Below are positions 1,840 to 50,893 of a stretch of 64,000 nucleotides of DNA, in pieces. The stretch lies in assembly GCA_037447605.1 (NCBI GenBank), contig CM074811.1, positions 1,240,001 through 1,304,000 on the forward strand, given 5' to 3'. Each line of letters opens with the position of its first letter. Positions within the stretch are counted from its first letter, which is position 1. The position numbers and the translations under genes are program-made. Source of the stretch: Zygnema circumcarinatum SAG 698-1b. Lineage: Eukaryota > Plantae > Zygnematophyceae. The notes beneath the pieces are model-generated. The model was not told the origin of the DNA and did no database searches. It was given only the letters and a program-made list of their open reading frames with translations.

Positions 1840-3583
1840 TGTCCTCCTTTAGCTTTAGTCGAGATTCCGGTAAACGAGAACTCTAATAAGCAGGGTATAT
1901 TCAACACGAACTGTCGGAGGAGAAAAACCAATGGCCAAAAAGGGAAAAGATTCTAGAGATAATATGAAACAGACTTTGCAGATTTTGCCAGTTTTCCTCG
2001 GAATAAAAACTTGCTCAGGTCATGCACATGTATTTGAGTAACTGCAGATGCAGATCGAGTTAAGAAACAGCAAAAGTCAGTCCATTGCCCAAATGGCAGC
2101 ATCTCCGTTCAAGAAAATTCCGAAAGTACATTGCGCAAGAAACGTCAGAATTTGACAATGTGCGCTAACGTGAATGTAACAAAGCGATGGACCAGCTTGG
2201 ATTTTCTGAGATTGATGGACAAAATGCGCCAAAAAACAAGAACAAAGACGTTTTTTGCAACAAAGTATAGCCACCAGATTGGATGTCACTAAGCTCCACC
2301 TATCCTTCCCATCTTGACCCAAACAGCCTTTCGGCATCAAAACCAAAAAAAAAAAAAAAAAACAAATCATTTACTCTATCACAGTGAACAGGAAAATGTA
2401 GATATCCTGTGCATTCTCCACCTTCTTAAAAAAAGATTCACGAGCAAACGGCCAAACCAACAAGGCATCGGAGAACCGAGAAAGCATATGCTCTATGGTG
2501 AGCCTCGCTTCTACTGTACCTTTGTGCAACAGAAGAAACTGTCAATACTGAACGAGCCTTGATAGCGAAAGAGGGACAGTCTGTGAGAAAGAGAAAATAT
2601 ATTCCCAGAATGATGCAGGCTTGGAGTGCGGTTGCAGGGATGACCAAGATGGGCGTGACAGATGTCACGCACGACCTTGGCCTTCCCGGAAGAGGCGTGA
2701 AGACTGGAGATGCTTCTCGCGGGAAACGAACCCTAAACGGTTCCATGCTCCCGTTAACGGTTTAACTGTGGGCAATGGAGAGGCCTTTGCATGCGTCTGC
2801 ACTGTATTGTGAACTGTGAGCTAACGCAGCGTGAAACTAGGCTCATGGAACGGCAGATAAGTGCCCCTGACTTCCATACATTTCTGTAGTGTACTATGGT
2901 ATCTGAATGGAGCTTCATATAAAAGGAAATGAAAGGAAGGAAGAGAGAGGGATTGGGAGAGAGAGAGGAAGAAAGAAAGAAAGGAATGAATACAGTAGAG
3001 AAGTACAGAAGTAAATTGAGAGGGATTCAGAAGAGTGCTTTGACAGAGTGAGTCGCTTTACATGTCCACAAGGGATCGAGGATAATCGATGTATAATTTA
3101 CACGAGCCCTGATTCAGCAACCCCGTTTTGGAGTGTTCAATAGAGGAATTTCATAATTAATCCCATCTTCTTTTGGCATCTTCCAACATTTGCCTAACAA
3201 AACTTACCTGCAATGACCGAGAGCTTATTTGGGGAGTCAAATTTCATGATTCTTCCATTTTGGTTATGTGCAATCTCTCGAGTTTACCCTCTTTTTGCCG
3301 ACACGTACCCATCTACTTTAGGTAGTGCTCCTCATGTCCTTAAACAGCACGATGAAAAAAAGAGATAAACGGAGGGGGGGTGGTGTTGGGAGAGAGCGAG
3401 AGAGAGAGGGAGAAAAAACAGGGCCCTTCCATGCGGGCTCAATAAGAGGAACAAGTACATTCTGCCTTCCCCCCACCAACCAACTCATGTTGGGAGACAG
3501 GGTTCAGTCAGGGTTCATGTTGGTCCAACATGAACCCTTCCTTTACAACTTCCAGTCCGACTGCCAATCACTCCTTTCCTACC

Positions 3584-22908: not shown

Positions 22909-27452
<4,544 letters not shown>

Positions 27453-45890: not shown

Positions 45891-48800
45891 TCCGGTAAAG
45901 CCCCACCTAAAACCTCTCTATCCAAGACCATTTCCTCCTCGTTTCAATCCCTTTGACAACACTTCTTTTTGCAAGATAGAAGAGGAGTGCCACCAACCGT
46001 TGTATGAAGGTAAGCAGACACTGATGCCAGATTACGGGCACCTCCGAATCCACCTCCGTGAAGCGCATGAAGTGGGCGACCAGGGAGTCGATGACCCTGT
46101 ACGGCAGAGCATACTTCTTGTCCAAAAGCAGCTTCATAAAGTACGAGTTTGTACCGGCATAGCGCATCTCCGCTATCTTCATCAGAGCCACACTGCTCGG
46201 AGGGGGGGTTGGGATTGAGATCACAATGCAAAGGTTAGTTCAAATGAATTAAGCTGCGGTGGATATGGAGAGAGATGTTCTCAGACCGGTCCTACGCTTC
46301 AAAACTCATCGCATTGGAATTTCTGAAGTTGAGGGAACAGATGTCGTGGGAGAGAATTCCAATGACAAAACTGACATTCTTCCTTGGTAAAAGTCATTCA
46401 AGCAACTTCTAAGTTGGTCTCGCCAATATGGCCCTGAGTTGGCAGTTGGAAGGTGCAGACATACTTTCAAAATCACAATGAAGCATGCTGAACTCTTTTA
46501 GACCTCGAGCAACACATGCTTATCAATAGCCGATATCAGCTTGAGGTTCAGTGGAAATCTCCTTACCTTGAATGGAGAACAGGAATGGACACCTTCTGAA
46601 GCACACTTCCAATAATAAATGCTTCGCGAAGATTACATGTTCGTGACTGCTCCACCAACAACACCCACACGTGAAACTGAAAATCTTAACGAATGTTCTC
46701 TACATCTCACAACCTTTCCCTTTGAAACTCCTTCCTCATGCCCTCTCTCTTTCATACTCTTTCAGTTTCAGCACAGGGAACAGCAGGTGTACCTGGCAAA
46801 GCGGAAGCAGGAGCCCCTTATAGAAAGCAGACGGCTTATAGACTGCCTTTTTGAGTGCCTGGTAAAGTGCAAAATGTAAACGCTTGTGAAGTTTGATATC
46901 GAGTCGGATGCGAGGGAGAAGAACAAGGTTGTAGAACTGCTGAGCCATTCGAGCATTCAGATTCGATGCAAACAGTCTTGTGGCTGCATAGACTGCATTT
47001 GGAGACCAATCTTCCGGAACTGTGAGCCATAGAATCTCCTCCCAATTGGAAAGTGACGGCACAATTTTGAAGGCTTTGGGAACCTTTCCCGCTTTGTAAC
47101 GTCTTAACAGCTTGCCCACCCTGCAGATGCAATTGAAGATGGGAAAAGAGACCATATAACTCACAAGTTCTTATTAGTATCGGACCGATGTTTGATTCCT
47201 GGCAAGTCCGCATTCAAGAAACTCACTTAGATGCCATCTTTAAGCCCCCCCTTTTGTAATCTTATTTTGATGAATCTTATCTTATCTTATCTTATCTCTA
47301 AGCGAGTTATTGGAAGAGGATTTCACCCTCTATAGACCTCCACTACTTTGCTGTCCACTCCCGTCAACGTGCGTTCCTCTGCAATCGCCAACACCATCAC
47401 AACCACTTTCAGAAACTCAGCGTTGAAATGAAATTTAGAAGATTGATGGCAAATATCTCCCTGGGTCCTCTCTCTAACTTAACAAATAGTGGGCAGCAAC
47501 ATTCTTGCCCATCAGCTTGCTTGAAGAAGAATATCTATGAAGGAAACATGCAAAGTCGAGGAATCAGATCATGCCTGAACTCTCTGCAGGGCCAATTCCA
47601 GCTTCCGTCTCCTTCTCTCTGATTTTCGCCATGATGATGTCAGCCAACGTTCTCTGTGGCACATCTTCTTGTGCCAAGAATCGAGCCATTATTTGCTCGT
47701 CCTCCTCTGTTACCTCTTCCTGAATTTTTTCAAAGCGGAATATAGCATTAGAATCACATACTTCTGCTTGAATTCTAAGGTCTTTCTGAGTACAATCTAA
47801 TCCCTACGAGCTGAATGGTTGATGATTAGAAGTCCGGGATCACAGGTTGGTTTTCATGACACCCCGTGAATAGCCTCAACACATAAACAGGTTGTTGCTT
47901 TGTTGAAAAGAACGTGCATATTCCACTGCATATTTCTCTGTATGTTGCAAAGTTTTACCCCCATCATCTCCTCATACTGGCTCTCCGTGTCTGAGTATGC
48001 TCGTTCGTCTTCCTCACTGTCACTATCTGCATCCCCTGTTCTCGCAATTGCCATTTCCGCTGCTGCAGAAAATGCTCGGCGGGCCGCTCCTTTTCCAGTT
48101 TCTTCATCTCTGAAGCCGAAGGAGATGAAGAAATGGAGCGATGAAGGATGAAAAAAAGGGTAATACTTGTCAGATACATCCCCCTGGTTTGAAAACATGC
48201 ATGAATTTCAGCGGCTGCAAGTTCAAAACATCGGGCAAAGTGGATAATTCCCCAATTACTCCAGAACTAAATTTCCCAGTCTGACTATCGCCGATAGGAT
48301 TCCTGGGAAACAAGTGTGATGGTTTTACCATACTATTCACGTCAAAAAAAAATATAAGACAAACGCACCTCTCAGCTTCAATTTCCTGTTGTTGTTGCCG
48401 GGCAACGCGAAGAATTCGCCCACTTACCCCTGGGTCCACATACTGATGCACAACAGAGTCCCGATAAATATGTTAATAGTTAATATGTTAATATTATAGC
48501 AAAGTCATCATAAAGTACTCAAGGTCCCAAAAACACGACATAAAAAAAGCAAAACCAACCTTGAAGTGCAAGAGGGTTGCAGCAAAGGTCTGACGGCAAT
48601 TTTCGAAGATAGGATCCCCAGAGCTCATGGAGTTACAGCACATTTCTTGAGCTTTTAAAAAATGTTCAAATGGGAGGGTGCCTGACGGAATAAGGCTTTC
48701 AGCTACCCTTATCTGGTAATAGAAGTCAGAAGAGCATAGTGTTGTTATCCAAAAAATACATGAACAAGGAGCACCACTCCAATTTTTAGTAGACCTTGTT

Positions 48801-49521
48801 CCTGAAAACCTAGTGTACTTTCAGTGCTTGCGCAACAAAGCGTTGATTTTATTTGCCTTGATTTTTCTAATGCAGACATGGTAGGACATACTGGCGTGTT
48901 TGAAGCCACAGTAAAAGCTTGTGAAGTAATAGACCAGTGTCTCGAAAAAGTAGTTAAGAAAAGCCCTAGAAAATAATTACACTACGCTGATCGTATCAGA
49001 CCATGGCAATGCCGATAAAATGCGCCTAAGTAAAGGAAGTTCAGAGCATGTTTGAACCGCATTATTTTTAAATAGATGCTTGGTAATGGTACTTTTGCCA
49101 ACGCCAGAGAGACCAGAGAATATGATAGCTTTATGTGACTATGCGACCTCTGTGGCATTTTGTATGGATTCTCACAGACGAACTCCAGCTGAGCGACATT
49201 TACAGCCTCTGGATGAACTCTAGTTTCTCTAGCGGCCTCCAATTCTAAACTCTTCAAACCAACATCCAGACATGCAGTCTGATCAATCAAGCAAGAAAAC
49301 CCCATTTCTGGACATTCGTCTTGAATTACATCTGCCCGTCGCATCAACTTTCATAATTAAGAACGCACGCCGCTTACCTCCTCTGCCTCCTGCCGTTGCC
49401 GAACTTTCTCACCGCGCCTCTTTACACTTCGCTCACTCATGAAGTCATCATCCATCTCCTGCTCCAAAGTAGCGCCATGCTTCTCTTTCTTGGCATCAGC
49501 AGGCCTCTTCTTCGGCTTCAT
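45171..49521 (-). CDS. BYSL: Bystin (ENP1, 40S biogenesis factor)
   Basis: [124 protein letters not shown], ..[18 protein letters not shown]. Confidence 0.93.
48842..49025 (+). pseudogene. gpmI: Fragment of bacterial-type 2,3-bisphosphoglycerate-independent phosphoglycerate mutase, 1-nt frameshift, antisense in bystin intron 1
   Basis: Translates as [40 protein letters not shown], then (+1 shift near 48962) [21 protein letters not shown]. Both iPGM metal-binding motifs, DMVGH and DHG, are present with the expected spacing. Confidence 0.85.
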
Positions 49522-50097
49522 TCTGCCTTTTACAGCAAAGTCGCACTCTCCCACTGTGCAATTAACCCTGTACCGGTTATCCAAGAACTGTAACCCTAAA
49601 CCTGCAACCCTGACCTGCTCCGCAACTTCCTCTGCAGAAAGCAGCAGAGCTTTGCAGCTCTGAAAACCCTAAATTTCCCCCTCGAAGCCTCCTTTACAGC
49701 AGCAATCCACGCACTCCCTCCCTCTCTTCCAAAGCCGCTCAGAGAAACCTTGGACTGCCAAATTTAGGGCTCCCTGTGTAGCCGCCGCACACAAATTAGA
49801 GCGTTCTAGTTCCACGGAATCCCGTAAAACAAAGCATTATCTCAGTTACGAAATTCCGTTTCAGCTGTCGAATTCCAATAATGTAGAAAAATACCGTAAT
49901 TATCAAGTTGCATGCGAAGTCCCGTAGAGATAGTTCCCGTGATACTGAAAAATAGAACGGTGAACGGTCAACAGGTTCCATGCTGGGGCCAGCCGCTTTT
50001 CCTCTTATCCCCGAGTGCGGGGCGCAGAGCTCCACGTGCTCCTTTCTGGCTGACTGGCAGCCATAGCCGGGAGGCTGCCACTGGAGCTGCCGCAGCC
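49522..50097. promoter_or_regulatory. Bidirectional promoter region bystin / plastid RPL34 with telo-box
   Basis: Divergent ATGs about 575 bp apart; AAACCCTA near 49664-49671 and a variant near 49591. Confidence 0.55.
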
Positions 50098-50893
50098 ATG
50101 GCTGCCGCCGCCATCTCGAGCCTCTCCTGCTCTGCACGCATGGTGAGTGCGCCTGCTCTTTCCGCATGCAAGGGAGTCCTCCGGGGAGGACACGTGTCGC
50201 TTCAGGCCGCTCGGTCCGCCTCTTCTCTCTGCCAGAGCGCCTTCATTTCTTCTAAGCCTGTGGGAGGATTCGCCAACGCTCTTGCTGGTGAGTGAGAGGG
50301 TGGTCAGGCTTATGTGGCCGTCGGAAGGCCGTTTTTTCCTGCATAGGTTGTTGCGTTTGAGTCGGCATTTCAGGACCATGGGGGTTCAGTGGAAGGAAAG
50401 GGCGTTGTAAATGAATCTGGTGACTGAATTCTGGCAGTATCCTGTGATTCCTGGTGGAATTAGGATTTTTAGGGTTTGCAGAGAGATGTGTTGGCACTGG
50501 TTCTAGTTTTGGCAGCATATGAGCGATCCAAAAGCCGTGAATCGCAGGTATTTCAGGTTTCCAGATGATTACTTGTTGTAAGCTCCATTCTTTCTTTGTA
50601 TGAATGTCTCTGATGTGGCTATGTCTCATGCAGGCACCGCATTCCGCCCGTCTCTCCAAGGCGTCGTTCTGCCTGTGAACCGCGGTGCACGCCTAATTGT
50701 TAGGGCGGGAGGTACTGCCATGGCTTGCACAAAGCGCAATGCCTCGCGCAAGAAGAGAGCAAAGGTTCATGGCTTCCGCGCTCGCATGAGCACCACATCA
50801 GGAATTGCAGTTCTCAAGCGCAGGCGGGCCAGGGGCAGGAAGGTCCTCTGCACTCAAACTCACTCTCCAACAGGCAAGAGGCCACCACTGTAA
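50098..50893 (+). CDS. RPL34: Plastid 50S ribosomal protein L34 with transit peptide
   Basis: Ser/Ala-rich N-terminus [15 protein letters not shown]; last exon [40 protein letters not shown] is the bL34 signature. Confidence 0.92.

Follow-up and report, generated by a model that had tools for sequence, protein, structure and literature searches.

The bystin locus and its first intron

The window, by which we mean the whole 64-kb stretch of DNA that was analysed, contains on its minus strand the gene for bystin, and the first intron of this gene holds two pieces of coding sequence that do not belong to it. The larger is a fragment of gpmI, the gene for cofactor-independent phosphoglycerate mutase (iPGM), read from the plus strand and hence antisense to bystin; the smaller is a P-loop relic on the minus strand. 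The features discussed here are listed below, with the evidence for each in parentheses.

48369–48442, minus strand: bystin exon 2 (RNA joints, spliced translation)
48443–49377, minus strand: bystin intron 1, 935 nt, GT..AG, which contains both relics (RNA contig splice joint 48442 to 49378 in two runs)
48815–49025, plus strand: gpmI fragment (Pfam and NCBIfam matches, blastn, sharp homology edges)
48959–48962, plus strand: A-run lengthened by one A; the resulting +1 frameshift separates ...VVKK from ALENN... (alignment to four bacterial relatives, adjacent profile positions)
49061–49132, minus strand: P-loop coding relic of 24 aa, comprising a beta-strand, a Walker A P-loop and a helix (Pfam and NCBIfam matches, motif rarity)
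49378–49521, minus strand: coding part of bystin exon 1, with the ATG at 49521 (spliced translation, RNA contigs)

The host gene was delineated with public contigs of four runs, all from the same species, aligned to positions 46800–50400. On the minus strand, the RNA contigs define five joints of the GT..AG type; one of them skips 48443–49377, and the spliced minus-strand message translates to bystin, with a match to Pfam PF05291 on the last exon checked (E = 9e-50). The RNA joint and the spliced bystin translation agree with the original prediction, made from the DNA letters, of a gpmI piece lying antisense in a bystin intron. Within intron 1, the fragment is approximately 370 and 350 nt away from the two splice sites. 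The other four bystin introns that were mapped are 196–259 nt long, making intron 1 approximately 700 nt longer; roughly 600 nt of it lie outside the recognised relics.

A frameshifted piece of gpmI

The gpmI fragment is 211 nt long, and its 70 codons correspond approximately to residues 383–452 of a 513-aa GpmI. The translation consists of a first piece of 49 aa and, after a +1 shift, a second piece of 21 aa. Piece 1 matches the Metalloenzyme profile of Pfam (PF01676) at profile positions 139–186 (E = 6.7e-13) and piece 2 matches it at positions 188–216 (E = 0.007). In the NCBIfam profile for iPGM (TIGR01307, 504 positions), the two pieces occupy positions 376–424 (E = 4.7e-14) and 426–449, respectively. 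Because the profile positions are contiguous across the break, the pieces were adjacent in a single gpmI, from which one residue has been lost. Both metal-site motifs, DMVGHTG and DHGN, are intact in the translation, as had been noticed earlier, and 17 of the 20 columns that are conserved at 95% or more in GpmI are kept. Relative to bacterial GpmI/iPGM as a family (TIGR01307, with iPGM_N and Metalloenzyme domains; structures 1EJJ and 4MY4), the fragment thus represents part of the phosphatase domain, with DMVGH and DHGN, but it retains only 70 of approximately 510 codons and these are frameshifted.

Alignment to four bacterial relatives traces the break to an extra A within the run at 48959–48962, the single additional base in an A-run to which the frameshift had already been attributed. 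At this point the window reads AAGAAAAGC, two of the relatives read AAGAAAGC and the other two read AAAAAAGC. Apart from this one base, 210 nt of the fragment run collinear with the bacterial genes, and no intron interrupts them, again as proposed.

The same alignment sets the limits of homology. On the left it starts at 48815, where the fragment encodes VLSVLAQQ and the relatives encode VLPVLAQQ; on the right it stops at 49024/49025 (...DKMR), and on both sides the flanks are unrelated. The fragment originally placed at 48842–49025 therefore begins 27 nt further to the left and keeps its end. Weak hints from tblastn and from an HMM of Bacteroidota GpmI, which would have carried the homology upstream to 48728 and downstream to 49058–49211, were rejected as chance, since the nucleotide alignment to close relatives stops at 48815/49025. 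A complete two-domain ORF of approximately 505 aa is absent, with homology confined to 48815–49025 and crossed by a +1 frameshift, and the fragment has neither a start codon nor the N-terminal domain. Judged by its sequence, it would be a dead gene piece, incapable of making the enzyme.

The closest relatives are uncultured Bacteroidota

Searches with phmmer point to a bacterial source. Piece 1 scores 63–65 bits against Bacteroidota proteins, compared with 39–43 bits against Firmicutes structures, 39 against E. coli GpmM, 33 against nematode enzymes and 25–29 against trypanosomatid iPGMs, which we take to be the closest solved relatives of the plant enzyme. For piece 2, the scores are 22–27 bits against Bacteroidota versus 11 against E. 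coli. In an exhaustive phmmer comparison with 1.84 billion representative proteins, the best 150 matches, to which no names are attached, are exclusively bacterial-looking iPGMs at 45–66% identity, and the plant-type iPGM signature was not found among them. A scan of GTDB species genomes gave at least 80 Bacteroidota loci at 51–73% among the matches listed; it is biased by its use of exact 8-residue patterns, and the restriction of the best 80 to Bacteroidota is not taken as independent proof.

A scan of metagenomes identified contig L083 (Ga0316608_1000093), whose GpmI is 88% identical in amino acids over residues 4–52 and whose DNA is 86% identical to the fragment over 201 nt, interrupted by one gap. 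With blastn, the metagenomic Bacteroidota contigs L083 and L169 match at 86–88% over 201–203 nt, with one gap. The identical L083 protein is present on 22 contigs from JGI, ENA, SRA and the GenBank MAG GCA_002325615.1. The neighbours of gpmI of this type, namely recA, asd, groES/EL, parA/parB, DUF5683, dapB, lepB and the class A RNase P RNA, indicate an ordinary bacterial chromosome, and the L083 and L163 contigs, with recA, groES/EL, parAB, dapB, lepB and class A RNase P, are plainly bacterial. The L083 GpmI, searched against 5.8 billion proteins, then returned a clade of relatives, the best of which (P0153) shares 65 of 70 residues (93%) with the fragment; clade members that bear NCBI names are labelled '[Bacteroidota bacterium]'. 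At the nucleotide level, the fragment is 83–86% identical to the four relatives over 210 aligned nt. The phmmer scores together with these identities uphold the original view of the fragment as a bacterial-type GpmI that is nearest to Bacteroidota.

A GpmI phylogeny, which had been suggested as a check, shows the fragment as sister to the metagenomic L083 (SH-aLRT 98), and the clade that they form stands beside the sampled Cytophagales, Flavobacteriales and Chitinophagales. No labelled genome compared has a GpmI more than 62% identical to that of L083, indicating a divergent, uncultured donor lineage, and the neighbouring genes in the L083 clade gave no match to labelled sequences. The placement of the fragment was settled by the finding of L083 in the metagenome scan. 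Before the close relatives were available, a quick tree put the fragment inside Bacteroidota; an AU test in their absence scored the constrained tree better than the free one, and branch-by-branch placement gave an ELW of 0.28 inside Bacteroidota and of approximately 0.55 for positions close to the stem or along a long branch.

An origin from a nuclear iPGM of the plant or green-algal host was rejected on the gap between the scores of the plant-like trypanosomatid iPGMs and those of Bacteroidota, together with the 93% identity to the metagenomic clade, in a comparison in which the trypanosomatid enzymes stood in for those of streptophytes. GC3 is 0.30 in the fragment and 0.50 in bystin. Separately, the EukProt collection of eukaryotic proteomes contains P0190, a 506-aa Bacteroidota-type GpmI that shares 62% identity with L083 over the region tested and whose presence there could reflect contamination or a further transfer.

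The fragment has decayed little

The four relatives are 88–91% identical to one another in nucleotide sequence, as opposed to 83–86% to the fragment. Differences between fragment and relatives are distributed over first, second and third codon positions as, for example, 7, 1 and 21, and they amount to 21–25 synonymous and 5–8 non-synonymous codons, a pattern expected of living genes that diverge under purifying selection. The 13 substitutions specific to the fragment are distributed as 5, 0 and 8. If all 13 were neutral, a complete lack of second-position changes would have a probability of approximately 0.005, and zero changes at 70 second positions place neutral divergence since insertion at or below approximately 4% per site (95%).

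The CpG observed/expected ratio of the fragment is 0.94, versus 0.56–0.65 in intron 1 and the other introns of bystin; CpG decay was rejected as the source of the fragment's own changes, only 1–2 of the 13 being in CpG context. The fragment contains a single indel and is free of stop codons. The clearest damage after insertion is the extra A and the replacement of N by D in an otherwise invariant LNF motif. In terms of neutral decay the insert appears young, on a scale that does not convert to years. The earlier suggestion of a recent insertion holds in this relative sense, given the purifying-selection pattern, the intact second positions, the undepleted CpG, the single indel and the open frame free of stops.

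A second relic on the opposite strand

The P-loop relic lies head-to-head with the gpmI piece, approximately 35 nt away. It matches RsgA_GTPase (E = 1.3e-4) and many other P-loop families in Pfam, and guanylate kinase (E = 7e-4) and EngB (E = 2.8e-3) in NCBIfam, matches that leave its family between a GTPase, such as RsgA or EngB, and a kinase, such as Gmk. The motif G..G.GK[ST] has a single occurrence in the six frames of the 64-kb window, which is the one in this relic, and the chance of finding it in a composition-matched random sequence of 935 nt is 4.5e-4.

For homologues of the relic, a protein search gave no candidate and a scan of viral contigs gave nothing; tblastn against plasmids reached only E values of approximately 0.4–0.7, and Atlas leads did not exceed 0.90. 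The relic was not found in approximately 35 kb of contigs from relatives of the donor. On the collected Bacteroidota contigs, the strongest tblastn hit, itself weak, was an EngB-like match of 45% over 29 aa (E = 0.016). Six contigs (L056, L124, L139, L142, L149 and L152) carry an EngB-like P-loop match approximately 0.4–3 kb downstream of their gpmI match and on the same strand. This proximity in Bacteroidota contigs may hint that both relics derive from one donor neighbourhood.

Given the second coding relic on the other strand, the insert is probably a mosaic of unrelated coding scraps. A 108-codon open frame on the minus strand at 48497–48820 was rejected as coding, with no Pfam match, low Atlas protein-likeness and an estimated chance probability of approximately 0.1; it is probably a chance frame, and could be a third, unrecognisable scrap.

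Origin and chromosomal linkage of the insert

We consider it very likely that the insert is dead bacterial chromosomal DNA, derived from the gpmI of an uncultured member of the Bacteroidota and fixed in bystin intron 1, probably by way of break repair. Approximately 210 nt from the middle of gpmI would have entered the intron, and at least one more coding scrap, the start of a P-loop NTPase, would have been inserted with it in the opposite orientation. The likeliest route, by analogy with organelle and Wolbachia DNA that has entered nuclei, would be end-joining repair of a chromosome break that took up stray bacterial DNA: the pieces are short, intragenic and of mixed orientation, with sharp ends, an intronic position and no mobile-element features, all of which favour such capture. 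At approximately 350–370 nt from either splice site, the insert would have left splicing intact and could have been tolerated and fixed. It would have no role and would now be starting to decay, with a 1-nt insertion and the N-to-D replacement in LNF as almost the only changes so far.

No direct or inverted repeats beyond chance were found around the insert, and no second gpmI copy was found within the 64-kb window. A gene fragment carried by a transposon of the Pack-MULE or Helitron type was rejected on these grounds, there being no terminal repeats, no target-site duplication and no second copy in the window; two unrelated scraps arranged head-to-head, without terminal repeats or duplications and without a copy nearby, fit a captured mosaic better than a transposon. 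Nuclear copies of organelle DNA (NUMTs and NUPTs) offer the nearest likeness in form. They too are short, often mosaic or inverted pieces of unlinked donor regions, located in introns or intergenic DNA, without transposon hallmarks and subject to neutral decay, and they arise when organelle DNA is captured by end joining at double-strand breaks. Here, in contrast, the donor is a foreign bacterium, and delivery would need another route, either through prey or associated cells that lyse or through an intracellular stage.

The fragment might instead be a secondary copy whose source, either a bacterial insert of greater size or a functional gpmI gained by horizontal transfer, lies elsewhere in the algal genome. 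The purifying-selection pattern on the fragment branch would fit a functional, host-resident copy as well as a bacterial gene. We nevertheless regard this origin as improbable: the window has no other copy, the GC3 of 0.30 and the undepleted CpG resemble those of the bacterial relatives and not those of host coding sequence or introns, the fragment is collinear with bacterial genes that lack introns, and it adjoins an unrelated P-loop scrap, as is typical of a primary mosaic insert.

Still less probable is that the piece has been exapted for regulation, for example as an antisense RNA or in the control of bystin intron retention. One RNA run does retain a sizeable amount of intron 1 (depth 47, versus 88 for the spliced form), but the intron depth is approximately 0–2 in another RNA run, and such a difference in retention between runs says nothing specific about the insert. 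Moreover, the contigs with retained intron carry no strand information, and the fragment displays no conservation beyond the bacterial coding pattern and no sign of selection in the host.

Several data sets place the fragment in the algal chromosome. DNA contigs from runs X1 and X2, which belong to different studies, each span 46800–50400 (3,601 bases) unbroken and with 0 differences; the data behind the assembly may be among these DNA runs, which are to that extent not fully independent, and the RNA runs come from two other studies. An unspliced RNA contig (record 11, run X7) covers 48464–49407, that is, the fragment and 30 nt of exon 1. Together, the DNA contigs of two studies and this RNA contig supply the physical link between fragment and bystin exons whose absence was to count against the original reading. 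The stretch is present in runs of eight studies, all of one species, and the abrupt end of bacterial similarity on both sides after 211 nt disfavours a mis-joined bacterial contig.

Contamination or chimerism is excluded for practical purposes. A false join at the bystin locus, made with reads of bacteria from a non-axenic culture, would agree with the frequent role of contamination where coding sequence exceeds 70% identity to that of prokaryotes (PMC5067920), and with DNA runs that may be the source of the assembly. Yet this is the least credible reading: contigs of two DNA studies span the whole 3.6 kb without a difference, a contig from the RNA data of a third study extends from the intron interior through the fragment into exon 1, the homology ends sharply instead of continuing along a bacterial contig, and the frameshift is absent from the bacterial relatives.

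Relation to known transfers

Ku and Martin argue that a eukaryotic sequence whose identity to a prokaryotic counterpart exceeds 70% most likely reflects an assembly artefact, and that there is a lack of recent acquisitions (PMC5067920). The fragment, which is not a functional transfer, does not contradict their conclusion about genes (PMC5067920). It does bear on the disputed question of whether bacterial DNA continues to enter eukaryotes, being a piece with 93% amino acid identity that is anchored in the spliced intron of a housekeeping gene, seen in both DNA and RNA data, and still bearing the codon-position pattern of a bacterial gene that was alive not long ago. It indicates that raw bacterial material enters the nucleus of an alga closely related to land plants and is fixed there. 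Functional gene transfers from bacteria to streptophytes run in the same direction; the material here is raw, unprocessed and non-functional input DNA.

Dead bacterial integrants in nuclei are already known as a kind, and the present one is a new and unusually clean case in an alga of the plant lineage. The transfers from Wolbachia to host nuclei ('nuwts') that Dunning Hotopp et al. reportedly described in 2007 are likewise non-functional bacterial DNA fixed in a eukaryotic nucleus, closely matching the donor clade in nucleotide sequence, with broken frames and a non-coding site. They differ in that their hosts are arthropods and nematodes as opposed to a green alga, in that the donor here is an uncultured member of the Bacteroidota not known to live inside the host, and in size, which ranges from kilobases to megabases compared with 211 nt here. 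It is conceivable, if rather doubtful, that the donor lineage lives in intimate, possibly intracellular, association with the alga and sheds a steady 'rain' of DNA into its nucleus. Were this so, the alga would be a free-living-eukaryote counterpart of the Wolbachia hosts, and the rate of bacterial DNA input to a plant-lineage nucleus would become measurable.

Other observations in the window

In run X17 (DNA, same species), only 0.39 of the sampled words of 48300–49600 are present, a shortfall that may stem from low coverage or from partial absence of the intron in the strain sequenced. The base at 48151 is absent from a low-depth RNA contig of run X7 (48082–48398, with intron 2 retained) and may mark a strain difference or an error.

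Upstream of the bystin ATG at 49521, in the 5′ leader or promoter, telo-box-like sequences (AAACCCTAA/TTTAGGG) are located at 49594–49600, 49667–49673 and 49763–49769. The telo-box is an element typical of plant ribosome-biogenesis genes. A short segment at 50052–50288 has a contig depth of approximately 2,000–3,000, compared with 100–300 for bystin; a loose contig end at 50288 continues beyond the aligned stretch, and the segment is probably an exon of a neighbouring gene that is spliced further on. Finally, the window as a whole contains 47 copies of TTTAGGG, the plant telomere repeat, versus approximately 9 expected, and dense interstitial arrays of this repeat at 25791–26833 are arranged head-to-head, with approximately 25 copies on the plus strand followed by approximately 10 on the minus strand.
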